From the NCBI GenBank assembly GCA_965649825.1, contig OZ287706.1:248001-312000 (forward strand): a DNA stretch of 64,000 nucleotides, in the 5' to 3' direction. Origin of the DNA: Penicillus capitatus (taxonomy: Eukaryota > Plantae > Chlorophyta). How positions within the stretch are numbered: position 1 is the stretch's first letter; each line of letters begins with the position of its first letter. The translations under genes and the position numbers were made by a program. The notes beneath the pieces were generated by a model that saw only the letters and a list, made by a program, of their open reading frames with translations, was not told the DNA's origin and made no database searches. This document shows, one piece after another, positions 7,527-57,979 of this stretch.

Positions 7527-9176
7527 TTAAACGTCATCGTCGTTCGCCATTTCTATCTCCTGAGGCTCGGCGGCAAGGACTACGTAACGTGATTTCATCA
7601 AAAACAGCGAAAAGAGGATGAAACTTGTGGTGACGGCGCCGACTGAGATGATCATGAGCCAGATAAACTGTTCCGGACGCGATGCTGCGATACCTCCAAC
7701 AAAAATCAAAAGCGTAAAGACATTTTCCAAAAGCCTCTGCGTTGCACACACGCGTCCCAGTTGCCCTTCCTCCACCCACTCTTGCAAAATCTGAGTGACG
7801 GAGAGATCAAAGAGCCACAGACCGAAGCGCGAAATGGCAATCGCCCAGACTAAAAAATTGAATCGGACCGTCTCCGAAACAGGCGCGATCATGTTGGCAA
7901 TGCTCGGAAGGGCGCCGAGGAGGACGCAGCAGAGGAAGAAGGAATTGGAGAGGATTCCAGTGGTACGGAGACTGAACCGAGCATGAAAGCGCGGGAAGAA
8001 CCTCGCACCCAATACCCCTGTCAAGGCACCCAGTCCTCGATAAAGACTCAGACCCACTTCAGAAAGACCCAGCCACTTGACATACGCCGTCATCAGTATG
8101 CCAAAGCTGAGTACAGTCAAGTGCAGGACGGACAGAGACAGTGTGGCCAGCACACAGGATTGCTTGAAGTAGAGCTGAAATCCGTCGGCGAGAGATCGGC
8201 CGTAGTTTACCACGCGCTTTCCAAAGGGTTCCCGATCCATGATCTCATCCTTCGTCCCAGATTCGGCCTTCGCCAACTGCGGTGCGTGGTTGGTGACGTA
8301 CCGGACCAAGGCCACTTCTGGAAACCACGCCACGAGGTTGTAGAGGAAGATCTCGATGACGGCCACTCGCATCGAGAAGACGTTCATGAGGACGCCCGAG
8401 AAGATCGGAGCTACGATAAGACAGATGAGGTCGATGGTCTTGAGCGTGGAGTTGAGTTTCGCGAGTTCCTGAGATTGCGTGCCCACTAAGGCCTTTGTCC
8501 AATCCTTCTCAATGGCGATGGTCCCGCCCATGGTGCCAATACTCGACATCGTGCCAAATGCCACGATCGCCAGCGATGCAAACGTGCCGACCGGTCCTGA
8601 AGGATGCGCGTGGCGCCAGAGCAGGAGCATCGAGGCTAGGGCTGCCAATACGAGACCGATGTTTTGAATGAAGTAAAAAGTGCAGACGGCTCTGAACCGT
8701 GGTGTTTTGTCGATGTAGACGCCGATGGAGGGACTGAGCAGCACAGAAGTGAGAGCTTGGACGAGACCAAAGAGTGAGACGTAAAAGAGTGAGCGCTTGT
8801 AGATCTCGATGAAAATCAAGCCGACAGCAAAGGACCAGGTTCGATCCGACCACGTTGACAGGGCGTGCGAAGCGCAGAGGGCAAATCTGACGCGTCCGGA
8901 AGGTAGAAGTGGTTCGTTGACTGTTTCTTCCGTTTCTTCCTTTTTGACTAGGGGCTCTTCTTCCAGGTCGATGCTCTCGGCCGACTCGTGGGAGCTCCTG
9001 ACGGACATGGCTGCTCGTTTGCGATGGACGTGGGTCCGACGATCGACGGAAGGACGTGTCGCACGACGGCGGTGGAGAGAAAGCGCAGAGAAAGGCTGCG
9101 ACTGACGCAGCGAAGTCCACGGAAAATGGTGTACGGCGGGAGAACGCACGAGATGGGTACACTTCATTCGATGCAC
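7527..9176 (-). CDS. FPN/IREG: Ferroportin / IREG family iron exporter (single exon)
   Basis: 549-aa ORF with SHALSTWSDRTWSFAVGL, IAIEKDW, LNSTLKTIDLICLIVAP, LHLTVLSFGILMTAY and SRFGLWLFDLSVTQILQE, plus many TM helices. Confidence 0.95.
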   Translation of the reverse strand: MHRMKCTHLVRSPAVHHFPWTSLRQSQPFSALSLHRRRATRPSVDRRTHVHRKRAAMSVRSSHESAESIDLEEEPLVKKEETEETVNEPLLPSGRVRFALCASHALSTWSDRTWSFAVGLIFIEIYKRSLFYVSLFGLVQALTSVLLSPSIGVYIDKTPRFRAVCTFYFIQNIGLVLAALASMLLLWRHAHPSGPVGTFASLAIVAFGTMSSIGTMGGTIAIEKDWTKALVGTQSQELAKLNSTLKTIDLICLIVAPIFSGVLMNVFSMRVAVIEIFLYNLVAWFPEVALVRYVTNHAPQLAKAESGTKDEIMDREPFGKRVVNYGRSLADGFQLYFKQSCVLATLSLSVLHLTVLSFGILMTAYVKWLGLSEVGLSLYRGLGALTGVLGARFFPRFHARFSLRTTGILSNSFFLCCVLLGALPSIANMIAPVSETVRFNFLVWAIAISRFGLWLFDLSVTQILQEWVEEGQLGRVCATQRLLENVFTLLIFVGGIAASRPEQFIWLMIISVGAVTTSFILFSLFLMKSRYVVLAAEPQEIEMANDDDV

Positions 9177-10944: not shown

Positions 10945-12768
10945 ATGAGACCGCGAACGCCGCGGCGAAGAACGGCAGCGCAGAGGTGCGTTTGACCCCG
11001 TCTTGCCCTTTCTTACATCAGCTTCATTGCAGGCTCAAGGCGCTTCGGCGCAAGAAGCCAGCCAACCACCCCGTCGAGACGTATGCCGTCTTGCAGCAGC
11101 AGCTCAAAGGCGAAGTAGCGCCGTTCCAATGCCTCCCCGAGACGTGGTCATCGTATTCTCTACAGGACGTACTGTTTGTCATCAGTGATTTGTCGAGCGT
11201 CGCTCGAGGCAGAACAGATCTTGGACGGTGGTCTGTGTATGCGGTCTGCGATGGACATGGTGGAACACGTGCCGCAAAATTTGTGCGTAAGCACTTGGCT
11301 TCAGCGCTTGTCAAGGTTCTCCCGTCTGGCCGGCTGCCTGCCCCCTCCTCAGAAGGTCTGCTCTCCCAACTCTCCCCCCTCCTATTCCTGCCTCGTTAGA
11401 CTGCGAGGAATACTGCAGAACTGTGCGGCATGCATTGGTTCGGTCATTTGTGAGTTTGCATGAAGCTTTTGCATCTGAGGGATGCCGGCTATCAGGTCAG
11501 GCCGCACTCAGCAGGGATGTAGAGAAAAGGACGCATGACATGGACAGGAACAACAGTCTCCGTCTGTTTGGTATGCGACTGGTTGTTGACCGCGGCGAAT
11601 GTGGCAGACTCTGAGGTGTTTCTCCTTATGGGTCAGTCCGTTCTGGAACTGACGAACTGTCATAAAGTTGAAAACAACAAGCAAGAAATAAAGAGGCATG
11701 CCAAATGCTCACTCTTCTCTCTCTTCTCACTCTTTTTTCATGTAGACTGCAGTCTGTGGGTGCAGATCTGCGCAGATTATCAAATAGTGGGCAGGGCCCG
11801 ATGTTAGATGGAGAGGCGGGAAGAGGGCCGTTGCGTGTATGGCCTGGAGGACTTGCTATGTCTAGGTCGCTAGGGGACCTCGTTTGTGATCCCCACATTG
11901 TTCCTGTACCACATATCCGTCAAGTACTCCACCACGGATGCCTTGCGGTGTCTCTCGATGAGGGAGGGTGATGCTGCTTAGGTGTGGATCCCCAAAGAGG
12001 GAGCTCGACTTGTGATGGCATCCGACGGTCTATGGGATCACGTTTCGGGTATGGAAGCATGTCGCACTGTACACGCGTCTCCATTGCTGGATTCTCCACA
12101 ACGACTCATGCAGGCGGCGAAAGCTGCTTCGAATGACGTTCTTTCGGATGACATATCTATCCTCGTCTTGGATCTGATGCCGCATGAAGGAGTAGATTTT
12201 TCTCAAAGACCATCAACACAAATAACTGTTTTACGTTCCATTCGGGGTTACCTTAGTCATCCCGGGAAACTCAAGAAGGCGAAGCGAAGTGAACTTATTG
12301 CAGATGAGGATGGACTCGTCGCCTATCCAGACATGAGCAAAAACCTCATACCCGAAATCTGCGATGTCCCATCCGCATCGTACGCCGCTCTGCCAGATAT
12401 CATAACCGTAGCGGGATGCTTTCTTTAGGGGTGATTCCGAGGATGATGCACATTCACGTAACTCTTCAATGACTTCCGAGAACTGGGATGTCTGCGAATG
12501 CTCCTGGGACTGTTCGGTCAATTCTTCGAGCAGTTGGGAAAAGGATGATCGCGACATCCTGGATACGGCTCAGAACTTCGTGACGGGTTCCAATCAGTCA
12601 AGAAGAACGAATCAGAGCGTGAAGATGGTGGTAAAGCAGTCCGTATCGAGACGCGATGTGGAGCGAGGTGACCTGAGCGATTTGTTGGATACATCCATGA
12701 CGACAACGGATGCGCCGTTGATGACAACGATCTATGAACCCGATGGCGAAAACGAAGAAACGACATGA
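10945..12768 (+). CDS. Protein phosphatase 2C (PPM family), multi-exon
   Basis: KGE|D, YAVCDGHGG, GTTVSV, AANVADS, GPLRVWPGGLAMSRSLGD, MASDGLWD, LSDDISIL; TGTAA at 12955-12959 downstream. Confidence 0.93.
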
Positions 12769-13317
12769 CGACCATCGTTGCCGGATGATGTCCCTTTATT
12801 TTTTGAATGTCCCGATGACACTGGACATACAGACAGACGCCAGCAATAACATGGACTGAAGCATTCGATCACCCAACCAGCCTGATTTGTGTGGGACGGA
12901 CGATTCATTCTGCGTTCATGACTCACCGCCACGACGACGAATCCATCTGTTATGTGTAAATATCTCTCTCATAGGCACGGTGCCTCGTTTTGTGAGCTGT
13001 CCATCCGCTTCTCAACAAAGCTTCGAGGTTTTTGGATGTACTTAATCTTCCCAATAAAGAATCGATTGAACTTCTAGAGCATCAAATTAGTGAAGCATGA
13101 GCGGTTTTTATCTATGAGCGATTTTGATGCGACGTCCTGATGTGTGTGCACCAAACTGATAAATTTGCTTGCTGTGCATTAGGGAGAACACAACAACAAT
13201 ACACGCACACACGCACTCATGTCACAGAGTCTTACAACTTGAATATCAATAAACAAGCAAACAAGCGATTGATAGGGGTCCTGTCAAAACCTCTATCGAG
13301 CCAAGTGTTTGTCTGAT

Positions 13318-14916
13318 CTATGTCAAAGTTATTGAAGGAAGGATGACGGGACTGCTGGGGTCACATTTGCTCAGATTCTCCATACGGCGATGGAACTGAG
13401 GCACAACCTGTTGCACGTTGTCTACGATGGCGCCGTGTATACCAAGTCTCCATTGCTCAGTCAGCCAGTCCATATCATCGTTCTCCAGTCCATACGTCAT
13501 CATCTGTAAGTGATGGCGACAGGCCACCTTTATGAGATGGGATTGGGCGCGAAGCTGAGACGTATCCACGACCAGGCCGTCCAATCCATGCTCCCGACAG
13601 AAATCGATGGCGCCGGCGATGCTCATCCGACGAGGATCGACGTGGAAATCAATGCCTCCGGTCGTGAGGAGCATGACAGGAATGGATGCTAGAGAACCGC
13701 TCTTTAGCTTGCGCTTCATTTCTGTACAGATATCTGGATCGAACGATGATATAACGATGTTCCCTTCCGGACGACATCGGGCGTCACGCTCCAGCGCCGC
13801 CACGATCGGCTGCGTCATCCGTTCGATCTCGGCAGGCGATGTGCGTTCGAGCGACGCCGGTGTGGCCATCTTGACTTCGAGATTGAGGCCCAGATCGATG
13901 GGGAGCGAAGTCAAGACGTCGTCTAAGCTGGGCAGAGCATCGTCATCCGAACAACGCCAGGCAGCGTGATGTGACGCGTAAGCAACGGGCAACTGGTCTG
14001 TTCGATAACGGAACTTACGGCACAGCATCTTGCTCTCACTCTTTACCTACATCCATCTCACGGCACATCCGACGGACGCATCGAATTGTCACACTTTCTC
14101 ATTGTTTTTCGATTTGTGGTAACCGAGCGATGTAAAGGTGTCGTGGTCGAGTTCGGCGATGGAGTGGCACGTGGGATTCGACGGTAAGCCATGGGCGATA
14201 TCGTCATCGTGCCAAATGACGGGAACGCCATCTCTTGTCACCTGGATCCGATACAAGACACGTCACATCTCTACCGATCTCCAAATGCAAGGTGGTCACT
14301 TGGACATCCATCTCGACAAAACGCGCCCCGTGGCGATGGGCAGCGAGGAACGACTGGATCGAATTCTCGCGCCAAATGTTAGCGACATCGGCTGTCATGT
14401 CGTTGGTGCCTAAGTTCTCGCCCATACCTGTCAGCCATACTGGAACGACCGAACTCCGAGGGTGCAGATTCTACCTCGATGTCCTCCAATGGCGAGAACC
14501 GTCGCTGCGCCGTTCGCGTCCGAATCGTGCAGAAGGTCTCTGGAAGAAACCGCCGCCGTCTGTTCATGCGACGCAAGAAATGACGGTTGGGCGCTCTGCA
14601 CTTTTGAAGCAGACCACAGACGCCGAACGACAGAAAGACGTGGCTGCTGGCTTTTCTCAACCTCGCGGCCCGTTAGCGAGGTTCTCGGTCGTACGTCCTT
14701 GGCGGCCTCCATGATTCTCCCAGATAAGAGGCCGGCCGTGATTTTTGAAAACAGACGGCTCAGGTGGCGCTGGATTGGGTGTGGGTGATGCCTATGATTC
14801 CATGGTGGTGAGAGTACTCCTATTATATGCGCAGCATTTCTGCCAGTAGATTCTGTGGAATCTTCCCACGCGGCCACAACGACGGTGTCTTCGTTGGCGA
14901 CCGTATACCTGCGCAT
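13318..14916 (-). CDS. GDPD: Glycerophosphodiester phosphodiesterase (GDE1/GDPD1-like)
   Basis: IGGHRG|MG, RENSIQSFLAAHRHGARFVEMDVQ|TRDGVPVIWHD, LNLEVK, ISSFDPD, MMTYG, GAIVDNV. Confidence 0.93.
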
Positions 14917-15681: not shown

Positions 15682-16593
15682 TCACGGTAGATCATGCGTC
15701 TTGGCCTCACGATCCGGAATCCAAAACAGACCGTCCCTCACAATCTCCGGAAAGGATACGTCAATGCGTGCCGGCTGATAATAGTGGGGCAAAACACCGC
15801 AGAGATGGGCATCCCAGCAGAAGACAAGAACGTGTTGGCGAAGGAATGCCGCGGTGATGTGGCGCTTGGCGTCCTCATGTATGATGCTATCGCAGTGGAC
15901 GTAGACACCATTGTATATTGTGTCGTATGCATTTCCCGAAAAGCCGAACTTCTCGACCGACCACCAAAACTGTATGGGAAGGAAAAGGAAAGAGATAGAA
16001 CATCTCAATTGGGAACCATACAGTCGAAGGCATCGCAACTGTCCACACGCCCGAACGGCACCATCGATGTCATCGCTGTTACAAAGAGCGAAAAACTTTC
16101 GACGCTGTTGGTCCCATTCCTTAGACTTCCAAAAAAATTGTCCTCGTCGAATGATTCCATCATGGCAGAACCAGGTCGATAGAAACGCAAACTCGCCAGG
16201 AAAGCTCTCCCATAGAGGCATCGCTGACGCGTCTGGTCCCTCTTGAGGCAGATCTGACGCGAATGGCGGCGGTTCGATCTCTTCGCCAAATCGCGTCATG
16301 CAGATGGCTCGCGAAGACTTGAATGGATAATGCCCTTTGATGTGGTGAAGGGGCAGCTGATGAACAGAGGCCTCTGCTGAGTTGAGACGAAGAGTACTCG
16401 TCACAAACTGTTGCCAGACCAGTGGTCGACACGCATGTCGAAGGGCTTTGCTGACCCAGCTGAGATGCCGAACGTCGACTGCGTCCAGTCGTGCCAGGAT
16501 CACCGAAAATAGGGCGTCGTTCTCGGCGAGCTCTTCCAACATCGAGACCCAATGCGTCCTTCCCGTTCGCTGTCTCTTCCGGCGTTTTGTCAT
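15682..16593 (-). CDS. F-box-like protein, 303 aa, intronless
   Basis: N-terminal DALFSVILARLDAVDVRHLSWVSKALRHAC fits the F-box pattern; the remainder is unassigned. Confidence 0.65.
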   Translation of the reverse strand: MTKRRKRQRTGRTHWVSMLEELAENDALFSVILARLDAVDVRHLSWVSKALRHACRPLVWQQFVTSTLRLNSAEASVHQLPLHHIKGHYPFKSSRAICMTRFGEEIEPPPFASDLPQEGPDASAMPLWESFPGEFAFLSTWFCHDGIIRRGQFFWKSKEWDQQRRKFFALCNSDDIDGAVRACGQLRCLRLYGSQLRCSISFLFLPIQFWWSVEKFGFSGNAYDTIYNGVYVHCDSIIHEDAKRHITAAFLRQHVLVFCWDAHLCGVLPHYYQPARIDVSFPEIVRDGLFWIPDREAKTHDLP

Positions 16594-16669
16594 TACGACT
16601 GCGCAACAAATGAACGATGTGACGTAGAGATAGACGCCATTTGTTCAAGAGCTCGGCGCCCGTGGTATC

Positions 16670-17738
16670 ATGCAGCTGAGTGTGACGCCCGAAGAAAAAG
16701 TGCAGGATGCATTGAAGCAGCTGCGTGTTGTCGACCGAGCCGACATCGACATCGTCTTCCGGCGCCTCGCCGATGCGCATCTCTACCAAGTAAATACACA
16801 CCGACGCGCCTAAGCCTTTTACGAAGTCTGACAGGACTTGGTTGCTTTTTTGAACAAATGGCAGTCAAAGAGCTTCGAAAAATGCGTCGCCGGAGTGCGA
16901 AACGTGATCGATATGTTGCAAGGGCGTCTCACGCGCGACCACACGTCGGCGGCGACGAAGGACATGCGAGACTTCCTCAAAGTGCGTTTCTGAGCACGCA
17001 TGGCTCTATCTCGATCAGCGGAGGCCTCTTTGCCATAGTCTCTTCAGAATGTGCACTCGGATCAGATGCTCGACGCGATCTTTGACATCCTCTTCTCCTA
17101 TTCCGATGATGTGACGTTTCTGGAGTTTGTGGATCTGAAACGTGTGGATGGATTTCTCAAGGCCAGGTGTCCTTTGCCGATTGGCCGCCTGACGCTGCAG
17201 TCGTCAATGGATGTGCCACCCATGACACCAGAGCACGTCAAAGCGACGATCATCATTGCGAAGCGTTGTCACAGAAATGGCGATCATCTGAAGGCAGGAC
17301 TCCTGTACCTCCAACTGACATGTCGTCGTGCACGAAGTGACGAGAATTTCACATTGGAGCAACGATACGCATTGCTGGACAGCCACGTCCAGACTTTGGT
17401 ACGCGAGACGTGCAGTAGGTGCACTCCTGAGTATGGCGGCGGCCCTTGTAGTTTCTGCATTCTGGCTCTGTATCGGCCCTGAGGCTCCTTGAGCGTTATC
17501 GAAAAGGAATCCTCTTACAGAAGATGCTGCTCTCGGCAATGGGGTCCGTTCGCGATGCAGCGACGAAACAGCTCAAAGGGGAAGTGCTTACGGATCGACA
17601 ACTCTTCACGTTGGTCACGACACATCCCAAACTCAAGGTGTGTCGACCGAGCGAACAGCAGCCGGTTGTTATATTGTCTGTCAGGATGACATTCGGTGGA
17701 GAGAGGAGCTGTTGAATTGGGTGCAGAGTTTTGAGTGA
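16670..17738 (+). CDS. NUP155: Nucleoporin NUP155, C-terminal segment only (~290 aa, multi-exon)
   Basis: Spliced product MQLSVTPEEKVQDALKQLRVVDRADIDIVFRRLADAHLYQ|DLVAFL...FEKCV...|SLQNVHSDQMLDAIFDIL...AKRCHRNGDHLKAGLLYLQL...FTLEQRYALL|...LLERYRKGILLQ...QLKGEVLTDRQLF matches in order the Nup155 helical region as I recall it (e.g. EEKENVAREA..ADLQTVCKRF..FYEAVV; AKYY..H..AAHVFLRLA..TLERR). Confidence 0.8.
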
Positions 17739-17770: not shown

Positions 17771-19191
17771 TTAGAAATCCGCATCTGTTGAAAAAACGTA
17801 GTGATTGCGTGACTTCAGGGAATCCATAACGCCAGCTGCTTGGTACTCGGCGACTCTTCTCTCGAAGAAATTTGTCTTTCCCTGAAGCGAGATCATCTCC
17901 ATCCAATCGAAAGGATTCGATGCGCCATAGATCTTGGAATACTGCAGCTGAACTAATAACCTACAGCAGAAAACTATATCGGTCCAAGACGTATGTAATA
18001 TGTGCAAAGAGTGACCTATCTGCCACAAACTGAATGTACTGCTGCATGAGCGTGGCGTTGATACCGACCAGTGAGACCGGCAGCGCTTCGCTGCAGAATG
18101 CGTTCTCCAGGTGGACGGCCTCTCGAACGATCCTGCAAGAGAGGTCGGTGGAGAGATAAGAGAGACGCCGTACGTGTGTGCCGTGACTTCTGGCAGTCGG
18201 TGTTTGAGAAGGGCATACAGACAGCATGCAAAATCTGTATGGAGACCCTCGTCACGTGAGATCAGCTCGTTTGAAAAGGTGAGTCCAGGCATCAGCCCTC
18301 GTTTCTTCAGCCAGAAGATGGCACAGAAGCTCCCGGAGAAATGGATGCCTTCGACACAGGCAAAAGCCAAGAGACGTTGGGCAAACGACCCGTCTATCAG
18401 GCTTCTCTCAATAAGAGCGACGACGCATCTTCATACACACCTGACTGAATCCATTTGAGTGCCCATTCCGCTTTCTGGCGGACACATGAGATGGAGTGGA
18501 TGGCATCGAAGAGATGGTGTCGATGGTGGACATCCTTAATGTAGTGCTCCAGCAGTAAACTGTACATCTCACTGTGGACATTCTCAATGGCGATCTGAAA
18601 TCCATAGAACGCACGAACTTCTGGAATCTGCACTTCTGAACCACACAGTACTGTGGTTCATTGCTGCGCCGCCATCGCCACTTGCCTTGAAAGAATCGGA
18701 CGGCTAGGTTTTCGATGACGATGCCATCGGATGCTGCAAAGAACGCCAAGACGGTCGAGATGAAGTGTTTCTCGTCTTTTGTCAGCGTCAGCCAATCTCT
18801 GTTGTCCTGAGAGAGATCGACCTCCTCAACGGTCCAAAAACTGGCAAGGGCTTTTTTGTAGAAAGTCCATAGATCTCGAAAGTGAACAGGGAACATGGAG
18901 AAGCGATCGGGGTTCTCTCGAAGCAATGGCTCCTCTTCGACGACCTCCTCCGGTGCACGACTGCACGAAGGGACATGTGTAAACCCTGATGGCTGGATGG
19001 GCAGCATACCAGTGTTGAGGATGCGAGATGTTCACCATCCTTGGCAGATCGGAGGATCCAGTAGAATCCGTTTTGCTGAGATCTTCGGCAGAGAGGCCGC
19101 CGTTAAGACTCACCTCGGAACTGGTTTGGGGTATTCGAGTGCACGCGAACGGGACCGAGTATTACTTTTGGCTGTGGATCTTGGTCGTCAT
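17771..19191 (-). CDS. RNR2: Ribonucleoside-diphosphate reductase small subunit (class Ia beta)
   Basis: [95 protein letters not shown]. Confidence 0.98.
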
Positions 19192-27445: not shown

Positions 27446-29220
27446 TCACCACGATGAGAAATCACCGAAGCTCCCTCCCTGGATATTTTTGGAGGGTGCT
27501 GGCTTTGGGGGAACGACTGCTTTGTGGCGTTTCCTCAGGTACCGTCCAACACCCAAATGTGTTTCTGTTGCTTCTTCTCGCTCCTTGGAGTGAAATCCAG
27601 GGTCACTGAACCACGATCCCTTTGGATCCTCCTCAGGGAGCTTCGTCGCAGCTTCCTTCTCCTCCATCATCATCTCTCGATACGGATTGCAGAAAACAGA
27701 GACACGCTGAATTCGGATGTCTTCTACTGGCCGATCTTCATCATCCGTCTGGACAGCTTCCATGGCAGACAGCGTTTCTGTACCGCCCACGAGCTTCCCG
27801 AACACGGTGTGTTTCTGATCGAGATGCGATGCAGCTTTGAACAGAATGAAGAACTGACTGCCATTCGTATGCTGTCCTGAATTGGCCATACTCAACACAC
27901 CTCGCGTCGAATGTGTCAACCGACTGTCCAGTTCATCTCTGAAAGTCGGTCCGTAAATCGATTCGCCTCCTTTACCCGTTCCCGTTGGATCGCCTCCCTG
28001 GATCATGAAGTCGCGTATGCTGCGATGAAAGAGCGTGTCATCGAAATAGCCCATCTCGCACAGTCCAATGAAATTCTCACACGTTCTTGGCACGAGATCA
28101 CAGTGCAGCTCCACGTTAAGATGCCCAAGCGTCGTGTGCAGTCTGACGTATCCTTTCTTCTTGGGGCATCGATCGACGCGCACCAGTTTTCGTGGATTCT
28201 TCGTCACCGGTGCCATCACCGTCGATGTTAGACCACTCGCCATAGCACCCGTCGATTCCAAACCCGGTCTGTACTCCACATGGGGTGCATAAGCTTCCGA
28301 AGGCGCATCTTTACTGCCGTTAGGATCGAACACCTCTTTCTTCTTGTCGCAATCTCGCTGCCGTTTCTTCCGGAGATTATCTTTACCGTGCAGATGATCC
28401 TGTGTGTCCCATGTCGATGCACCCGGTTTGAACATCATCTTTGGCTTTTCTGTCGCCTGTGATGCCAGTCTCTTCTGCATCTTGGCCTGAGCAAGCAGCT
28501 GTCGTGCCTGTTCTCTTTTGCCCCCACCTCCACCTTCGAATGCGTCCTTGGATTCTTTCGTTCCCAAACTTTTCAAAATGCGCTTCGTATCGCTGTCGAC
28601 ATTTCGAAAGCAGCCATCGTCCGCGTCTTCGCGAGGCACCTCCCAGCCCTTCGTCACGTGATCAAACTGAGACAGCACTCGGTTTTTGACACTCAACGGA
28701 TCCTGAAGATGAATGATGTCACTCTTCTGAAACGCATCATCGGTCAATAGCTCTTTCCAGTTCTTCGGTTTGATGTTTAGCTCCAATATCGCCTGAAACA
28801 GAAAGACGATCATCAGAAGCAGGATGGCAAACATACTTCATAGCAGTAGACATTCCCTGTCGTCTTGACCGCGGCGATGTGGGTGTGTTCAGTAAACACT
28901 TTGTTCATAACGGGGCAGTGATACTCTCCCTCTGCATTCTTGTGGAACGTCAGCTGCGTCAGGTCCTTCAGTTCGAGGGCCTCTCCATTCACTGGGTTCT
29001 TGTGATACTTGCGTATGTAGGGCACGGCGTTGACGATATCGAAGACACAGCCATCAGGTGAACAGACAGGGTCTTCGAATGGGGTAAACGAAATACCGCA
29101 GCAGTAGAAGGGAAGCTTGGAGAAAGGAAGCGAGCCCGTTTTGCGATGACCGCCCCACTCTTCGGCCCATTCCTTGGTCGTAATGTATAGACGGTCTTTG
29201 GAGTGCTGCTTTTTGCCCAT
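27446..29220 (-). CDS. PPIL2: U-box/RING cyclophilin PPIL2/CYP65
   Basis: MGKKQHSKDRLYITTKEW, LPFYCC, YHCPVMNKVF; cyclophilin domain LNVELHCDLVPRTCENF...FHRSIRDFMIQGGDPTGTG...SMANSGQHTNGSQFFI...LDQKHTVFG. Confidence 0.97.
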
Positions 29221-37735: not shown

Positions 37736-39844
37736 ATGGAAATCGATCGAGCGTCAAACGACGCCCTGCCGCCAGAGCGTTTCAGTCTCTACGTCTTCTT
37801 GACCATCCGAACAGCTCAACTGCAGCATGGATTGCGTCATGGCGACTACGAGCGTTACAGGTATGTCGATTCTCCTTCAGCACGATCGCCTGATGCACAC
37901 GTTGGCAGGAAATACTGTACCGCACGACTGACCCGTATTCGCAAGAAACTCGCCATTACCAATCGTCGAGCACTTAGAGGAGGCAAACCTGCGGCGAAGC
38001 CTCCTGAACTGCACACGATTGAGGATCCCAGGTCACACCATTCAGGCTCATGTCGTTGTTGAATGGCAGACCAGGGCTTTGCAAATTCCGCTGATGTTGA
38101 GTGAAAGAGCCTGGGCCTATGGTATGCAGAAGAAAGGGGAGTTAGCCGCTATGGGTCATTCCTTGAAGCGACGCGGGACAATGTTGCAAAAATTGACGCA
38201 AGCTGTCAAAGCATCAAATGCACTTCTGGCTCTCTGCGAGCGAAAATGTGATCAACGAAGCTGCTTAGAAGCTACCGGGTATTCTGAGATGCTCAAAGGA
38301 ATCAGGTGCATGGAGTCGCAAATGAAATGGAAGGAGGGATTGCGCCATCTCACGAGAGCCAAGAAGATACTCGAAGGACTGACGAAGATTTCGGAAATGG
38401 AAGTGCAGTCCGTTTTTCTCCAGGCCATCGAAGAACTGGAGCCCAATATTCGCTTCTGCAGATACGAAATGCAAAAACGCAACGAAGAGGAAGAAGCGCC
38501 GTCGTTTGACGACATCACCAGTCAATTGGATCAAATGAAGATCAGCACAGATCCCAAAAGGGATGCCGTTTCTGCCCTCTCCATCACTTGGTGCCAACAT
38601 CAATACCCCGTCAAGAATGAAAAACTGAGCGAATACCTTCAAACGGCACAAAAGCACGAAAAACAGCTGAACTCGACCATACAGGATCATGCCTCGTGGG
38701 TAGCAACGTACGAGAAAATCATTGCTGCTTACATGGAGATGGAGAACAATATTAAGAAAGCACTGGCCACAGGTGCGCATCCCCTTGGAGGATGCTTGAT
38801 CGACGCGGATGGTTTTCAGGTGGCGGCGTCAGCGTGTTTGCTGGAGAAGACTTGGAAGAATTGCAATTGGCTGTGGTCGGAACGCTCCTGCGACACTCTA
38901 TTGAGAAAGCAAAGCTTCAGATTCATCGAAACCAAGAGCTCTTTCAAGAAACCTTGATCAAGGCCATCAATTCCAAGAAGCAGCAGGTCTTGCCCACCAA
39001 GACTCCACCTCATGGCTTCAGCTTTGTCAAAGCAGGGCGTCAAATCTAGAGCAGAAACCCTCGTGCGTTTGTGCGATTCGATTATCGGCCTCATCTTGGA
39101 GCAATCGGAGCTCGGCACAAAACTCGGTGGCGAAAGAGGAGAGCAGTTGATGGAGGAATGTGCCATTCATGTGCGCTCGTGTTGCCGGTGTCTGTCCGAG
39201 TAAGGCTGCGTCTGTAGGCATCTCTTTTTCAAGCGTTTCGGTGCTTCTACATGGCACATATCTTTCGAAGCACCAATAGCTTTGCAGAGAGCTATGCCTT
39301 ATTCGATCGTTGTATCAAGCGAACGAGCATTGCCTTGGATCAGCTTACAGAGACAATGAGAGATGACAATGTCATGACGTCGCAGCTCAATGACCTCCAA
39401 CGGAGGGCACACACATTCAAGTAGACAGCTTCCCTATTCCGAGAGACCCCTTGCCGAGATGCATGGTGTAGATGCTCTGCCCAGTCAGAGATGGCGATTG
39501 GCGATTTGATTGAGCGCCGGGAGGCACAGAGGCAAATGGAGTCTATCGAAATAGACGGCGGAGAAGTGTCCTCGTCCAAAGGAAAGAAATCTAAGAAGCC
39601 ATCACAACCCGCGCAGCGTTATATGGCAGATCATTTAAATCAATGGGAGGCTTTTGTGGGTTCAGAAGGGAAAAGCATTCGACTCTTCAAAATCCCGCCT
39701 CCCCTCTCTAGCATTCCTGTTCGACCATTCATTCTCGATTCGACGCTCAATCACATTCAGAAACCCGATCTCAAACATCGTCTGCCTCCAGAAGAAGCAC
39801 AAGGCGTCTTTTCCAAACTGTTTGGTTTTTCTGGCTGGAAATAA
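37736..39844 (+). CDS. SRP68: Signal recognition particle subunit SRP68
   Basis: IRTAQLQHGLRHGDYERYR|KYCTARL.RIRK, LMLSERAWAYGMQKK, ELEPNIRFCRYE, C-terminal PPLSSIPVRPFILDS..LFGFSGWK*. Confidence 0.95.
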
Positions 39845-39850
39845 GATCGT

Positions 39851-41242
39851 TCAGATGTGTGGTATCTGAGGAGCTATAGTGCACGGATAGAGATCCACGG
39901 CTAAACGTGAGGGTTTTCTGAGAGAGATGTGCGCGATCTGTTGGCACTGGACAATTGTGAGCTTGCGTAATGTCTCGATCGTGTTGAGGTTGTCGAGTCC
40001 CTGATGGGTAATGGCACTCAAGAAAAACAGGGTGAGAAATTCCAGACATGGCAGATGCACCAGTACAGCCAGTCCTGCATTTGTGATATCCCGCGTTCCT
40101 GCTCCAATTCTCAAATCCACCAACGATGCGAGATTCTTCAGAAACTCCAGTCCAGTGTCGGTAATCTTGGGACACATGCGCACGTCTAAGCACTTTAGAA
40201 ATCTGAACTCGGATAGGTGCGAGATACTGCTGTTGGTCAGCGCAGAGCAGCCCATGAGATCTAACCGCGAGAGCGGTATGTTTTTGCAGTAGGAAAATCC
40301 GACGCCTCCAATGCCGTTGCACATTCGGACGTCCAGACTGGTCAGGGCAGGTACCTCTGAGAGATTCCAGATACCAATGTCCGATACACAACGGCAGCTT
40401 CGGACGCTGAGATGTTTCAATCGACCAAAATGGCGCATCAATCGAACGGTCTTATCGCCCAGTTTATCATTTCCGCCAAGAATAAGGGATTGCAGATTCG
40501 ACAGCGTCGTCAGTGGTTGGATAAAACGATGCGAGAGTCCGTTCTCCGATAGATCCAGATATGTCAAATGGATCATCGATGCGAGTGTTCGGATCCCTTC
40601 GATCAAAGTAAATTCGCTTCCTGCGATTTCGAGATGCGTCAGCTGCTTTAATCGGAGCAGTGCCTGAATGCCGCTTTTGCTAAAGGGTCCCCTGCGCGAT
40701 GCATGAGAGACAAAACGAATGGCTAATGCTTCTATCTGAGGCGTCACTTTCGGCAGTTCATGTAACCACGAGTCGGAAACGATGCTATGGTCTCTTAACG
40801 TCAGTTTCTTGAGATTCGAGAAACGGCGCAGAGAATCGAGATCCCAAAAGGTAAAGATCGTCAGCTTCGGTGTCAGGTCCACAATGGATCTGGTCAGTTC
40901 CCTGTACCAGTGACGATTGACCAATCGGCAGTTCTTGACTGTTTTCTTTCCATTCGTCAGATCTTGTTCGAGAAACCGTCGCAGACATGCCAAAACGTCT
41001 GGATGACATTCAGACCAGACAGAAGGACTATCAGGATAACGCATCTGAACACGGACTGCATTCGTACAGAGTGACGGAATGTCATGCTCGACCTGATTTG
41101 TTGGAAGTCTGAATCGAGAGGTCGACGGAAGGCGCCTCTTGCGGTCGGTGTGTCGAGGAGCGCGAATCCCTGTGGTGAAGACTCTTATCGAGTCTGCCCG
41201 CTTCTGCAGTCGAGAGACGATTGAAAAGAAAGGGGATGGCAT
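39851..41242 (-). CDS. F-box/LRR-repeat protein (FBXL-like), intronless; true start may be ATG 41044
   Basis: WSECHPDVLACL..CRLVNRHW (F-box-like) followed by cysteine-containing LRRs (LTYLDLSEN, LKHLSVRSCRCVSD, LDVRMCPKITDTGL). Confidence 0.88.
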   Translation of the reverse strand: MPSPFFSIVSRLQKRADSIRVFTTGIRAPRHTDRKRRLPSTSRFRLPTNQVEHDIPSLCTNAVRVQMRYPDSPSVWSECHPDVLACLRRFLEQDLTNGKKTVKNCRLVNRHWYRELTRSIVDLTPKLTIFTFWDLDSLRRFSNLKKLTLRDHSIVSDSWLHELPKVTPQIEALAIRFVSHASRRGPFSKSGIQALLRLKQLTHLEIAGSEFTLIEGIRTLASMIHLTYLDLSENGLSHRFIQPLTTLSNLQSLILGGNDKLGDKTVRLMRHFGRLKHLSVRSCRCVSDIGIWNLSEVPALTSLDVRMCNGIGGVGFSYCKNIPLSRLDLMGCSALTNSSISHLSEFRFLKCLDVRMCPKITDTGLEFLKNLASLVDLRIGAGTRDITNAGLAVLVHLPCLEFLTLFFLSAITHQGLDNLNTIETLRKLTIVQCQQIAHISLRKPSRLAVDLYPCTIAPQIPHI

Positions 41243-43631
41243 CAAAGCATACGTTGTCGGAAGGCGTGTGCTCGACGAGCGGCTTCGCCGTGCTGCGCGA
41301 TCGCCATTTGATGAGAACGAAATACAGAAACGACGACGCGGTGAAGCAGTAGAGGCAGAGATGCCAAAGGTCCATCACGACTGCGACTCTGTTTTCGTTT
41401 CTCCGAGAATGAGCAAATGTTGGCAATTCCGAATGGAATTCGCTCACCTCGGTGTCGCGAGTGTGAACAGATGAGCGATATTGGAGAGTCCGTATGCGTC
41501 ATTAGCGCCGGGGAGAGGCAAAGCGCAGCGATGGCGAACGCATGCCCTATCACGCATTTGAAATGTCAGACATCGTCGAGCGCTGTCTGTCCGCCGCACG
41601 AAGATGCAGAGCTGGGGGGGCGAAGAGCATTAGCTAAAACGTCCTTCGTTGGTTTTGGCTGGAGCGGGAGTGCCGAGGTTCACTCTATGGTCTCTCTGGT
41701 TCTGTTCGAGCACCTACGTGTAGAAGAAGAGATGTGTACTTCACTCAGAGCCTACATACCCTCTGTATACATTCAACCATATGCATCTGGATTGGCCGAC
41801 TTGATAGCGTTCGTTGCCTGTGCTGTCGACTGGATGCGTTGATGACATCGTACCCTGTGTCATCGGCTATCCATCACCGCAGATGATGACGAGCATGTGT
41901 TCGTTCGTTCGTGATTGGATTGTGATGCATGCCTATGTGCACTGCTTTGAAGATACGTGTGGGTTTGGCGACAGACGATACAGGTGCCTTCCATGTCATT
42001 GTCTGCATCGTTTCCGATCTGATCGACGGAATCAGATTTGAGAATGTCTCTAGATAAATGTCATGTCTCAACGACAAGTCGACTGTTAACGGTCATCGCC
42101 ACAGCGTCGATGCATTGGATGGCACATACAACTGCAGAGGTACGCACAAGGGGGACGGTTCGCATAGCACACAGTTGCTATGGCCTTTTTGCTGAACGAC
42201 TGTCCGAAATGACATTGTTCACGGCAATAGACCAGTACCAGATCACGCCTGTGTAGATATCATCCATCCTCAGTGACGTGATGACTGCCTCCTGATGAGG
42301 ACGGCGCCCATTCGCCGTCCTTCATCGTGCAACACATCAAATTTCGCGCGACTCCGATTCCTCGCGATGGCTTATCTTCTGTCTGCAAAATCGATGACGT
42401 CACCATTATCTCACATTACTCTTCCTCTCATCCGCCTCCATGATGTGACAGCGACATGTCATTTGTCACTGATACAGATAAGGTGAGGGGTGCCTTTTGG
42501 CTTCTGAGTCAAAGATGCGGTCTGCTCATGTGCATTTGTGGAGTTTTCTTACGATATGGTGTGCATATCATTCACCTGCATGTATTCCGCAAACCATCAG
42601 ACGCATGTAATACCCATCGACATCGCAACAACATCGCCTAGACAATCGCATCCTGAATACGTCAGCTGCTAAGGCGTTCTTCCGCGTTATCGTTTTTCTC
42701 ACGCCGATCGCTCAGCGCAGCAACATCCCTTCGACTTCGCCAGAGACACAGTGGCCGACGGCGTTTACCATAGCCCTTTCAGCACTTCCGAATTCACCGA
42801 TCCTTCGCGCGAAGCCGCCTCGTCGCCAACGCACTAGTGCCTTGCTGCACGTTATCCTTCCTTGACCCCGGCGAGGATGTGGCGAATCCGCGTGGCATGC
42901 AGACGAGGCGACCTTTTTCATCGCGTCATGTGCACGGTAGGCTGCCTCCTTGCCACCCTGTCACTTCTCCGGAGATAATCTTCGCGGCGGAACTGCGCCT
43001 CGTACCACGACAACGGTACAGCGAACGTCGTTTAAACGCGCCGAGGCAGAATCTGTCGTCTACTGCGTACTGCCTAGGGATTGTACGGACATTCCTTATC
43101 CGGTTCTTTTCCCGTAGATACTACCACGGACGGTGACTGTTTCCAATACCCTCACCAAAACCCGCGTGGACTGTGGCGCATGATGCTAAAAAACCAAATC
43201 CAATGCCTCGAGCACATTTAACAGCACAGTCAACGGGAGTTCCAACCCAGCAAGGCCATCATCATGTTCGGCCAGAAGCCGCACACGAACACACGAGACA
43301 TCTCATGAGACATCGCCTGAGTCAATGCGCTTCTATCTAGGTGGTGCATGTGTCTTGGTGTTGATACCATAGAGCCTAGCAAGGCAGCATGACGCGCCGC
43401 ACTTTCTTTTAGTGCAGCCACGATTCATAGGAAAACAGGCGTGAAATACACCATGAGCCGATAAGCTGCGAAACCACAGATGCCAGCTGTCCAGCCCGCG
43501 TCGCCAGATGAGTCAACTCAATGGAAGTTTGACGAAGGAATAACGAAGTCGGCGCGTTGTTTTTGTGCTACGTGTCCACAAAACGCTTAAGTCAGCTTCG
43601 TCGCAACGCGGGCTGCCCGTCGCGGTCTTCC

Positions 43632-54575: not shown

Positions 54576-54935
54576 TCATTCTTGTGTGCTTCTGTGTGTG
54601 ACGTGCGTTTTCTGAGCGACATTCCAGAAATACCAACGGCGAAGCTGATTGAGTTGCGCCATCTCATTGCAGATGTGACATGCCAAGAGGAGATAGTTAC
54701 GTGGCTGCACTCTCCAGGCGAAGCGCATGAAGAGAAGGGAATAGACGCAGAGGACGCCAGTCATCTTGGGCGAAATGATCTCGGGAGACTTGCGTGCATC
54801 TGAAAGACCCGCCAGGACGAAACCCCAATTGGCAGCAGGACCCCAGAAGTGTGTTGTAAAGATGCCTTCGTTTGAATACGCCCAAGTGCGAAAACGCGAT
54901 AGCAGACCGACGGCGCTCTTCCCATTCGCAGCCAT
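54576..54935 (-). CDS. MPC1: Mitochondrial pyruvate carrier (MPC1-like), intronless
   Basis: [56 protein letters not shown]; an in-frame upstream ATG lies at 54995. Confidence 0.97.
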
Positions 54936-54984
54936 GGAGACGAAGGCGACAAAACGGTGCGCGTACCGGTTCGTTTTTCCGTTG

Positions 54985-55004: not shown

Positions 55005-57693
55005 TCAGAGATAAGTATTCTTGAGCGGTCCATTCAAAATCTCCAGTCGTGATTGGAGAACGCTTGACGTTGTCGCCTCGGCAGCTTCTTTCAATCTCCG
55101 CAGCCCCTGAACGCCCGTTTTCAGATCAGCACTTAAGGTGGATCAATGTGATCAACGTGATCAACATACTTCATAGCCATTGATATCTTTCTCGCTCCAG
55201 TAAGTCGAGGCATGGTGCTTGAAGAAATCCATGGACTGGTTATATTCACTGGTGTCCATTTTCAAGTGATCCATAAAGGATCTGATGAATGGTGTGATCG
55301 GCGACTCCAGTTTTCCGGCAAAGAGCAAACGACTGAAGATCTGCAGACACAGAGCCATCCTCACCAATCCGATGGAGTGGATGTTCAGGACCATGTCATT
55401 CAATGCTTGTCTTTCTTCTTCGCTCATGAGCTGAACGATGGAGTGGATCTCTCTCTTTCGAAAAGTGCCGACCAAGATGACTCCCTCACGGCATCTCTGC
55501 ATAAACAGCCTAAAGACAAGAAAACGGATGCTGTCGATAGGGCGGAGATCGATAGAGACGGCTGCTGTACAGAAGCGACATCATTTCGTGGATTTCGATC
55601 TGATCCACTTCGGTCGGGAAAATGAACTGCTCTGAGAGACGAGGATCAAACGGTTTGACATATTCCCCCACGACGTGACGTACGTCATCCAACGCCTGAA
55701 CGGTCCAGAACAGTGCTTGATGTGACAGTTCCTTTTCGGCTTTGAGCTGCCCGGTCGATGGATCTTGAGCAATAGTAAAGAGCTTCTTCCACCAGAACGG
55801 CTTCACGATCTGGCGCAAGATGAGAAGCACGCCCTTGAATGTATCTGAAAATTCGATGTCGTCTTCCGTCTCCGGTCTCTGATTTTCGACGAATGGCTGC
55901 CGTTCCGTAGCATTCTGTTGAGGAGGGGGTATCGTAGGGGGCATGAGTCTGGTCCTTTTCACTTTCTTTGCCTTTTCAAAAAGATCCTGCCGTCCAAAGA
56001 CGCTCTTGATCTGGACAGGATGGTACCGCCCGATCAGACAGAGCATCGCAGCGGTTTCCACTTTTCCATAGAGACGACAGAACTGTTCGACGCATCTGGA
56101 CAGCTGCTGAGGAAACTGAATCTTGAGAATCTCGTGGAGTTGCTCGATCGGAGGACGCACACGGAGAATCGATACGCTCTGTGTGTCCAGCACGATGTGT
56201 CGCGTCAGTGCCGGATTGCATTGCTGCGAGATGAAATCTGTCTCCCGTTCGAAGCCTTCAAAATTGACGCTCTGTTTTGCTTCATGGGTTGCTACGCTCA
56301 AAAAGCCATGGGGCAATTCATACTGTCTTCTCAAGAAAACCGCTCCGTTTTCGATGCGCTTTGTCGGTTCCGCTGCCAAGTACTGCATGACAGAGAAAGA
56401 TTGCACACGATCGAGCTCTTCACACACAAGCCAGGACGTCCCATCAGAGGAAGGCCGGATGGCTGTAACCGTGGCATTTCTGTTAAGGCGTTCGTCGAGA
56501 ACGGGTATCGGTCTGTCGTCATTGATCATCTCGCACTGATTGTAGAACCATCCATCGGATGCCCAATTGGCCGTATTCCAATAGAAACCCTCGAGGTATG
56601 TCACGGTAAACCGCAACCGACGTCCATCGCTGTAGATGCACATTCCACGAAACATGCATTCCTGGCTCTCGATCGGAACGACGTCGATCAGAGTCGACTG
56701 ACCAAAATGACCAGCGTTCGGAAACTCAGTAGCCACGCGACGAATGGGACTGGTCGGGTTATCTCCGCCGAGTGTAAACAGGGCCATTGTATTCGCAGCT
56801 CCGACCACGATCAGAATCTTGCTGTTCTCGTGGACCGTTAGCTTGACGACAGCTCTATTTTGAATAGGACTGGCCCATCCAAGTCCGTTCAACTTGCACT
56901 TTCTCCATCCCAGCGAGATTCCTGAAAGATGCCGTCGTGACGAATGCGAAGAGAATGGCATATGGAGGAGATAACCGTGGTACTGCAGTTCGTAGATGTG
57001 CCCCGAGGAGGTGCCCACAAAGATGCGACCCTGACAGCCGCCACAGACCACTGTCGGTCTCGAAGCAATGTCCGTTGAGATATCGGGACTCTTGAGATGC
57101 AACACATCATCCTTGTACGTCGCCACGAACAAATGAATCTGCACAAACGCATCCTCCGTTCATCATCTGCGACGTTTTTTTATCGACTTGTCACACTTCA
57201 CGCATGTACGCGAGGACGATGATTTTCTGATCGCGCTCGGCAAAGGTCTTTTCAACTGGCGTGACGCAACACATGGTTTGGATGTCGGCATCGACGGGCT
57301 TGTATCTGCGGCAGTTGGACTGGGCGTGATCGTGTCCAATGGACCAGCAAAACAGCTCCTTTCCCGCACTTACCAACACGACCCCATGCGGCCCCAATTC
57401 GGGGATCAATGCTGTAGACTTCACTGCTGCATCTCTGTATGCAGTTGTCGCCTCTGGAGGCCAACTCTGGCGCATCTCTTGGCACAAAACGCTGGGTAGC
57501 TGCACAAACAAACACATATGCATATATATGGTATCGAACGTCGGACGTCAGGAGAAGCCGTCTCGATCGTCGTTCGACGATGTGGTCCTTCGCTTGCCGT
57601 GACGGTCTCGAGCGATGGCGTATCCAAGTATCCAGCGATGATCGGGATGTGGGGCCCATTCTCACGATTCTTACGAAAACGAAAGACGTTCAT
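55005..57693 (-). CDS. NUP155: Nucleoporin NUP155, N-terminal ~780 aa only (beta-propeller plus first helical part)
   Basis: GRIFVGTSSGHIYELQY, QQC..LTRHIVL....LRVRPPIEQLHEIL, EQFCRLYGKVETAAM, FSDTFKGVLLILRQIVKPFW, FFKHHASTYWSEKDINGYE|GLRRLKEAAE. The last exon (from 55106) closes at TGA 55005-55007. Confidence 0.85.
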
Positions 57694-57979
57694 TTCACGC
57701 GCCAATCTGGAGAACGCTATCGAGGAGGTATTTCATCATTATGCGTATCTTCCCAACCGTAGACGCTCCCTTCCGCGTAGCCGTATACTTTTAATCGAGT
57801 TTCGCAGGAAATCTGCTGTTTTGAAAAGACAGACAGAGAGTTTCGCCCCGAACTCCTCATCGCACCACACTCTATCCGCACGCCGACAAATTGCTTTTCA
57901 TATTTGCACAATATCGTTTACTTCTCATCTGTGCCTCGCTAACGAACGTTACTAGCTGTTCAACTTCACCTATTTGAGC

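Follow-up and report, generated by a model that had tools for sequence, protein, structure and literature searches.

Organisation of the two loci

The window, that is, the whole stretch of 64,000 nucleotides analysed here, is nuclear DNA of a compact eukaryote with a G+C content of ~50 %. Among other proteins it encodes a ferroportin which shares 57 % identity with a Caulerpa lentillifera protein, with the next named matches (33-39 %) found in the Trebouxiophyceae. Among the collections searched, Caulerpa (Bryopsidales) is accordingly the nearest named relative of this green alga. A CYP38/PsbQ-like thylakoid-lumen cyclophilin is encoded nearby in relatives, which fits a photosynthetic host. 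Two genes, hereafter referred to as the N-half and C-half genes, were compared with the nucleoporin Nup155 (Table 1). Gene spacing beside them is very tight, with intergenic gaps of 69 to 76 nt, and introns are very short, ranging from 45 to 66 nt in the two window genes and from 41 to 66 nt in the relatives of the window.

The N-half gene, on the minus strand, comprises seven exons encoding 784 amino acids, with the ATG at 57693 and the TGA at 55007-55005. In the preliminary description of this DNA the coding region was taken to stop at 55077, while the reading frame actually continues for a further twenty-three codons up to this TGA. An in-frame, stop-free intron of 51 nt (55391-55341) is located within what appeared to be exon 5, where it translates into seventeen plausible residues and can be recognised only by comparison with a relative. 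It was exposed by the occurrence of a stop and a frameshift in the apparent exon 5 of a sister species, in which the equivalent segment (contigs L001 and L002) is 55 nt in length and contains the stop. When the 51-nt intron is removed from the N-half, the score against the Pfam Nucleoporin_C model increases from 15.9 to 21.2 bits. Similar hidden in-frame introns may lie in other apparent exons of this genome.

The start of a mitochondrial pyruvate carrier (MPC) gene lies 69 nt beyond the N-half stop, which leaves no space for Nup155 to continue downstream, and the adjacency of these two genes is conserved in the orthologous contigs L001 to L003. TGTAA is the usual polyadenylation signal in chlorophyte algae, and this pentamer is present on the minus strand at 54980-54984, within the 69-nt gap and 21 nt past the N-half stop. 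If it is used, the N-half mRNA would end within a few tens of bases of the MPC ATG; the sister species carries TATAA at this position. On the other side of the gene, a plus-strand ORF was noted by eye from position 57972 onward, beginning ~280 nt upstream of the N-half ATG and running in the opposite direction. If this ORF is real, the N-half, too, forms part of a head-to-head gene pair.

The C-half gene, on the plus strand, comprises five exons encoding 285 amino acids, with an all-helical product being predicted. It extends from the ATG at 16670 to the TGA at 17736-17738, and in-frame stops occur 16 and 18 codons upstream of this ATG. Its four introns (45, 66, 53 and 47 nt) are all of the GT-AG type in the window. 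Since the residues DLVAFLNKWQ are kept as coding in relatives, the first intron, which had been described as extending to 16864, is confined to 16790-16834 (45 nt) and the product amounts to 285 amino acids. The second intron has an apparent GC donor in two relatives (L004:1059-1103, AAG/GCAAGC; L005:2022-2072, AAA/GCAGGA), with GT at 16982 in the window.

A divergent ORF, coding for a protein of 303 amino acids, starts at 16593, which places it 76 nt from the C-half ATG, in agreement with the spacing of ~75 nt first noted. The gap is presumed to represent a shared bidirectional promoter region. This ORF had been labelled as F-box, a label for which there is no Pfam support, with no family being found at E <= 1e-3. 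It also adjoins the C-half in the sister species (L007 and L008; 51 % identity) and in L009 (99 %), and evolves fast, considering that the Nup155 halves retain 82-89 % identity with their counterparts in the sister species. The right-hand neighbour of the C-half, a convergent gene for the small subunit of ribonucleotide reductase (RNR), is conserved in L005, L007, L008 and L009.

Table 1 Genes and features in the window, with coordinates counted from the first nucleotide of the window
Feature	Position (nt)	Strand	Basis or remark
N-half gene, Nup155 beta-propeller and proximal solenoid	55005-57693	-	Pfam, PDB matches, dN/dS
N-half exons 1-4	57693-57547, 57499-57197, 57138-56976, 56921-55571	-	
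N-half exons 5-7	55509-55392, 55340-55170, 55106-55005 (including TGA)	-	
N-half tail, ATTSSVLQSRLEILNGPLKNTYL and stop	55005-55076	-	23 codons; conserved versus sister species
Mitochondrial pyruvate carrier (MPC) gene	54576-54935	-	Pfam MPC on orthologous ORFs in L001/L002
C-half gene, putative Nup155 C-terminal-domain piece	16670-17738	+	Exon model corrected with relatives, AF2, Foldseek, dN/dS
C-half exons	16670-16789, 16835-16981, 17048-17398, 17452-17637, 17685-17738 (including TGA)	+	
Gap between C-half ATG and divergent neighbour start	16594-16669		76 nt; same head-to-head arrangement in L007-L009
Divergent neighbour ORF, 303 aa	15682-16593	-	ORF list; no Pfam family at E <= 1e-3
RNR small-subunit gene, convergent with C-half	17771-19007	-	Pfam Ribonuc_red_sm
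Ferroportin, GDPD, cyclophilin, SRP68 and LRR protein genes	7527-9176 (-), 13318-14028 (-), 27446-28834 (-), 38019-38957 (+), 39851-41245 (-)		Ordinary nuclear genes

Family assignment of the N-half and C-half proteins

The Pfam models for the Nup155 and Nup133 types of nucleoporin are shared. Residues 89-258 of the N-half match Nucleoporin_N (PF08801) with an E-value of 1.4e-7 and 31 bits (gathering cut-off 23.7), while the match with Nucleoporin_C (E 1.4e-4; 21 bits) covers profile positions 1-152 of 672 only and lies below the cut-off of 25.9 bits. Comparison of the N-half against the PDB identified the Nup155 of 9hcj (E 9e-8), with the match including the GRIF..G..G.IYE motif, and weaker matches to yeast Nup170 and Arabidopsis NUP155. 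The nucleoporins matched in the PDB, on the basis of sequence for the N-half and of fold for the C-half, all belong to Nup155/Nup170/NUP155, with no Nup133 among them. No PDB match was obtained with the last 240 residues of the N-half. The earlier placement of the minus-strand gene at 57.7-55.0 kb in the NUP155 family is upheld by the Nucleoporin_N match above cut-off and by 9hcj, and as judged from its sequence this gene encodes a very diverged Nup155 which ends early in the solenoid. The long Nucleoporin_C solenoid is absent from the polypeptide, which terminates at a conserved stop of its own, 69 nt before the MPC gene begins.

The two halves were searched as separate sequences, and those searches that involved the C-half were negative for nucleoporins throughout. 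No Pfam family was found for the C-half, and no nucleoporin was reached in the PDB by phmmer with the C-half sequence or with a profile of its six-member family. Likewise, a C-half relative from Caulerpa (P0005) had no match in the PDB, and an exhaustive phmmer search with the C-half against 1.84 billion protein representatives yielded eight short relatives and no nucleoporin. The match to a Nup155 peptide which the preliminary description gave for this segment was not reproduced by any sequence search.

An all-helical AF2 model with a pLDDT of 90.3 and a pTM of 0.85 was obtained for the C-half from a family alignment comprising exon translations from four relatives and the Caulerpa protein; the model obtained from the single sequence (pLDDT 49) was too poor for use. 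When the former was compared with 350,542 PDB chains using Foldseek, nine of the ten top matches were Nup170 C-terminal domain (CTD) or NUP155 chains. The top matches include the Chaetomium Nup170 CTD (5haz, 5hb0) and SOL (5hb1) and human NUP155 (7tbk_A2), with yeast Nup170/157 (9a0f, 3i5p) and Xenopus NUP155 (7wkk) also among the top ten and an Arabidopsis NUP155 chain (9sob_D) at rank 14. Foldseek probabilities of 0.95-1.00 were assigned to 5haz, 5hb0, 7tbk_A2, 7wkk, 3i5p and 9sob_D, with TMq values of up to 0.57. The E-values are modest to marginal (4e-3 at best) and the matches carry no residue ranges; generic TPR and HEAT proteins appear from ranks 7 and 11 onward, with lower TM-scores. 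The predicted structure thus suggests a Nup155/Nup170-CTD-like fold for the C-half, with the sequence tests being negative. Of the checks proposed at the outset, profile searches recognised the N-half and missed the C-half, and AlphaFold modelling of the C-half gave the fold just described. It is because of the predicted fold, together with the colinearity described below, that the C-half is assigned to Nup155 without sequence support.

Putative coverage of Nup155 by the two proteins

For comparison with human NUP155 a fragment of 315 residues was used as query, which a check against the PDB found to agree with residues 1077-1391 at every position but the first three, and which corresponds to positions 386-665 of the Nucleoporin_C profile. 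When the C-half family was aligned with this fragment using hhalign, the only match was that of C-half residues 162-235 to human residues 1085-1161, which is weak (E 0.094; probability 0.6 %) and colinear. Arithmetic through this weak match, assuming that there are no large indels, lets the C-half extend from about profile position 232 (its residue 1) to about 516 of 672, which roughly corresponds to residues ~920-1210 of human NUP155. Residue 701 of the N-half equates to profile position 152, and the ...KEAAE motif (residue 761) which precedes the tail lies near ~212. According to this arithmetic, with its single weak hhalign link, the end of the N-half core and the start of the C-half are ~20 profile positions apart without any overlap, and ~150 profile positions, or roughly 180 C-terminal residues of human NUP155 (1212-1391), are found in neither gene.

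The proposition that the C-half starts exactly where the N-half stops can therefore be retained to within ~20 profile positions by an indirect route, and the word exactly has to be given up. Substantial overlap with the N-half, for which a check had been recommended, was not found by the same weakly linked arithmetic. The last ~200 residues of canonical Nup155 had also been described as apparently lacking, which agrees with the ~150-180 residues apparently missing from both genes here.

Layout of the halves in related assemblies

Close relatives of the two proteins in the protein databases come from two ENA metagenome assemblies, ERZ25074695 and ERZ26696514. The former derives from essentially the same species as the window (MPC 100 % and neighbour ORF 99 % identical) and carries both halves on one 954-kb contig, ~38 kb apart and on opposite strands. 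The latter represents the sister species (N-half 82-83 % and C-half 89 % identical), in which the halves are located ~52 kb apart, also on opposite strands, of one 915-kb contig. A second contig set of this assembly (L002 and L007) repeats the local surroundings of each half. The MPC gene follows the N-half in all cases, while the C-half is flanked by the divergent ORF and the RNR small-subunit gene. The comparison with related species which had been called for thus returns separate halves in the same layout, and as this layout recurs in independent assemblies of two species, the assembly artefact considered in the preliminary description is very unlikely.

Two tandem MPC copies follow the N-half in the sister species (L001:11984-12326 and 12592-12948, and likewise in L002). 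The first of these shares 65 % identity with the window MPC, has ACG at the position of the start ATG in the window, and is possibly a decaying duplicate. An ORF for an RVT_1 reverse transcriptase is located upstream of the N-half in the sister species (L001:3143-4255; L002:1201-2232) and was not seen in the locus from the same species as the window (L003). Insertions of the RVT_1 type may account for the spacing of 38 kb versus ~52 kb between the halves.

Stand-alone C-half genes in distant relatives

The eight C-half relatives recovered by exhaustive phmmer are all short, and among them are Logan contigs (L004, L005 and L006) which originate from three further samples. In the protein g7176.t1 of Caulerpa lentillifera (EukProt EP00210; 280 aa), residues 4-273 align with C-half residues 9-269 at 32 % identity. 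Stand-alone C-half genes with an equivalent ATG start could be distinguished in L004, L006 and, with g7176.t1 aligned end to end, C. lentillifera. An in-frame stop occurs three codons before the ATG in L006, where the upstream gene is on the other strand, and 27 codons before it in L004, with no ATG between. An ATG occurs at the equivalent point in L005 as well; the frame there remains open for ~95 codons further upstream, and the start in L005 is less certain. A profile search for further stand-alone C-half proteins found Caulerpa P0005 only.

The L005 contig is colinear with the 13.8-18.6 kb region of the window, in the order GDPD, C-half and RNR, and thus the genomic context of the C-half predates that divergence. 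Furthermore, the presence of a stand-alone C-half in distant relatives, including C. lentillifera, indicates that it predates a deep divergence. The fission looks old, with the age of the N-half truncation being read from the C-half alone. In 30 kb of the L004 contig there is no N-half, no MPC gene and no synteny with the window, and scans of JGI metagenomes with N-half and C-half patterns found nothing.

Selection and signals at the ends of the two genes

The letters quoted in the preliminary description for a junction between the two loci are present, with ...GLRRLKEAAE ending at 55077 and followed by GCGACA, and with catgcAG preceding 16676. The supposed GC donor after 55077 fared less well, as GAG/GCGACA in the window reads GAA/GAGACA in the sister species (L001/L002). 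Between these two species the 23-codon tail differs by six synonymous and three non-synonymous changes (dN/dS 0.14) and its stop is conserved, while three indels occur in the intron just upstream. The dN/dS values for the window versus the sister species, at 0.15 for the C-half (285 codons) and 0.19 for the N-half (449-codon exon), indicate that both halves are under purifying selection. The would-be intron halves form a duplex of -41.2 kcal/mol when computed with duplexfold, compared to -40.2 +/- 4.9 kcal/mol for shuffled sequences, with 115 of 300 shuffles being at least as stable. Independent translation of the C-half had been proposed, and is consistent with the conserved ATG at 16670 and the in-frame stops upstream of it. 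Its counterparts in L004, L005 and L006 have the ATG at the C-half start and no conserved AG context. Taken at the level of sequence, the evidence favours two separately translated proteins.

Proposed gene fission and alternative explanations

The presence of two complete and conserved ORFs, 38 kb apart, sustains the headline of the preliminary description, a NUP155 split with a separate plus-strand gene for its C-terminal part. Among the three candidate causes it listed, gene fission is selected by the conserved starts and stops, the selection on both parts and the layout of the loci. An old fission of Nup155 into two independent genes, in a green-algal lineage related to Caulerpa, is thus considered the likely explanation, and the inner ring in this alga would probably be built from a putative two-piece Nup155. 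Gene 1 (784 aa) would contribute the beta-propeller and the proximal alpha-solenoid, ending in the conserved 23-residue tail and its own stop, while gene 2 (285 aa), with its own ATG, would supply the next stretch of the solenoid; the last ~150-180 canonical residues would have been lost or be encoded elsewhere. The two polypeptides may dock non-covalently, helix to helix, and so rebuild a single Nup155-like scaffold. Docking would make use of a helix-packing surface which is internal to the solenoid in the single-chain protein, possibly with the help of the conserved tail. A two-polypeptide Nup155 without the last ~180 residues may well extend throughout a major group of siphonous (giant, multinucleate) green algae, from this lineage to Caulerpa.

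The geometry of the locus suggests that a single inversion of ~16.6-55.0 kb could have given rise to the split, having cut the ancestral gene at one end and a bidirectional promoter at the other. Re-inverting this segment would place the C-half directly after the N-half and bring the MPC gene head to head with the divergent ORF. One inversion which broke the gene as well as a bidirectional promoter would thus account for the split and also for the promoter of the C-half. The N-half tail was also considered as a duplicate of the first helix of the C-half, produced by staggered inversion breaks. This was rejected, as the local alignment between the two is at chance level, with its score being reached by 4190 and 1342 of 5000 shuffles.

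As the C-half lacks significant sequence similarity to any Nup155, it could be an unrelated helical-repeat protein with a generic solenoid likeness, the N-half then being a C-terminally truncated Nup155. The hhalign E-value of 0.094, Foldseek E-values of 4e-3 or weaker and the appearance of TPR and HEAT proteins from ranks 7 and 11 are all in keeping with such a generic likeness. However, nine of the ten top folds belong to the Nup155 family and come from four organisms, with Arabidopsis at rank 14, and their TM-scores exceed those of the generic repeats. The best local profile match is located where colinearity would place it, and it is precisely this part that is absent from the partner gene on the same contig, so that an unrelated protein appears unlikely. 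A different relationship would apply if the two genes represent a split and diverged paralogue which has been sub- or neo-functionalised, with an intact canonical NUP155 elsewhere in the genome performing the essential role. Since canonical Nup155 CTDs are invisible to sequence searches with the C-half, such an intact copy would be missed. Both pieces are under purifying selection, however, the C-half has been kept as far out as Caulerpa, and searches with the N-half and C-half returned only split pieces from the two metagenome assemblies. A split paralogue is accordingly regarded as quite unlikely.

Gene fission must also be set against two explanations under which Nup155 would still be made in one piece. 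The halves could be joined in one mRNA by trans-splicing of 55077 to 16676 through split-intron halves, as in Giardia, and the join is indeed in frame, with GCGACA after 55077 and catgcAG before 16676, and with apparent GC-AG introns occurring in relatives. This candidate of the preliminary description was rejected, since the donor is lost in the sister species (GAA/GAG), the twenty-three codons beyond it are coding and end in a conserved stop, and the intron halves are not complementary, their duplex being no better than those of shuffles (115/300 at least as stable). With L004, L005 and L006 having an ATG and no conserved AG context at the C-half start, trans-splicing is very improbable. The gene could alternatively be contiguous in the real chromosome and appear split through misassembly or a segregating inversion, for inverting 16.6-55.0 kb once would bring the halves back together exactly. 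The independent long-contig assemblies of two species share the same layout, however, and the N-half carries its conserved coding tail with the MPC gene directly after it. The left-hand context of the C-half is furthermore conserved in the more distant L005, and a contiguous gene can be dismissed with still greater assurance.

Comparison with known systems

Few scaffold proteins of the nuclear pore are as conserved and as essential as Nup155/Nup170, which connects the inner ring with the membrane and with the outer rings. Members of the family are located in the inner ring and bind Nup35/53, Nup93 and Nup98. In comparative surveys Nup155 is treated as a single beta-propeller/alpha-solenoid polypeptide, and to our knowledge no gene fission affecting it has been reported. 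A literature search identified no report of a split Nup155 and no citation of any of the run accessions, and a 2021 review of NPC diversification features Nup155 orthologues only as beta-propeller/alpha-solenoid proteins (PMC8421043).

If the proposed fission is correct, this alga would possess a natural split Nup155, with a solenoid assembled non-covalently at a defined break point. A fixed and selected split would pinpoint a position at which the solenoid can be interrupted, information of value to work on structure and assembly, and would reveal which of the C-terminal contacts at least one lineage can do without. It may also explain cases in which automated annotation calls Nup155 truncated or missing in these algae. 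For genome evolution, it would represent a clean example of gene fission, whose geometry points to one inversion that interrupted a bidirectional promoter. No general principle is changed by a split Nup155, and its relevance lies with specialists in the nuclear pore and in genome evolution.

The canonical Nup155/Nup170/Nup157 proteins share with this system the Nucleoporin_N beta-propeller followed by an alpha-solenoid, and the predicted fold of gene 2 corresponds to the Nup170/NUP155 CTD. They differ in that the canonical protein is one polypeptide, with 1391 amino acids in human, 1502 in yeast Nup170 and 1464 in Arabidopsis, whereas in this alga there are two genes, encoding 784 and 285 amino acids on opposite strands and 38 kb apart, with an extremely diverged sequence and approximately the last 150-180 residues apparently absent. 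A nucleoporin unit that occurs as two polypeptides in one assembly, as would be the case here, is also known from Nup98-Nup96/Nup145N-Nup145C. These are, however, derived from one gene and one precursor through autoproteolysis, in contrast to the two genes with their own starts and stops, and no cleavage, in this alga. The coding parts of one conserved protein are similarly located at distant loci for Hsp90 and the dynein heavy chains of Giardia. The Giardia split introns have conserved splice sites and complementary halves and yield one mRNA, whereas neither feature is found in this alga, which has two complete ORFs. With eukaryotic gene fissions, in which one ancestral gene has given rise to two genes for complementary domains, the system shares purifying selection on both parts, and its putative complementary coverage of the ancestral protein and independent expression signals would be further parallels.
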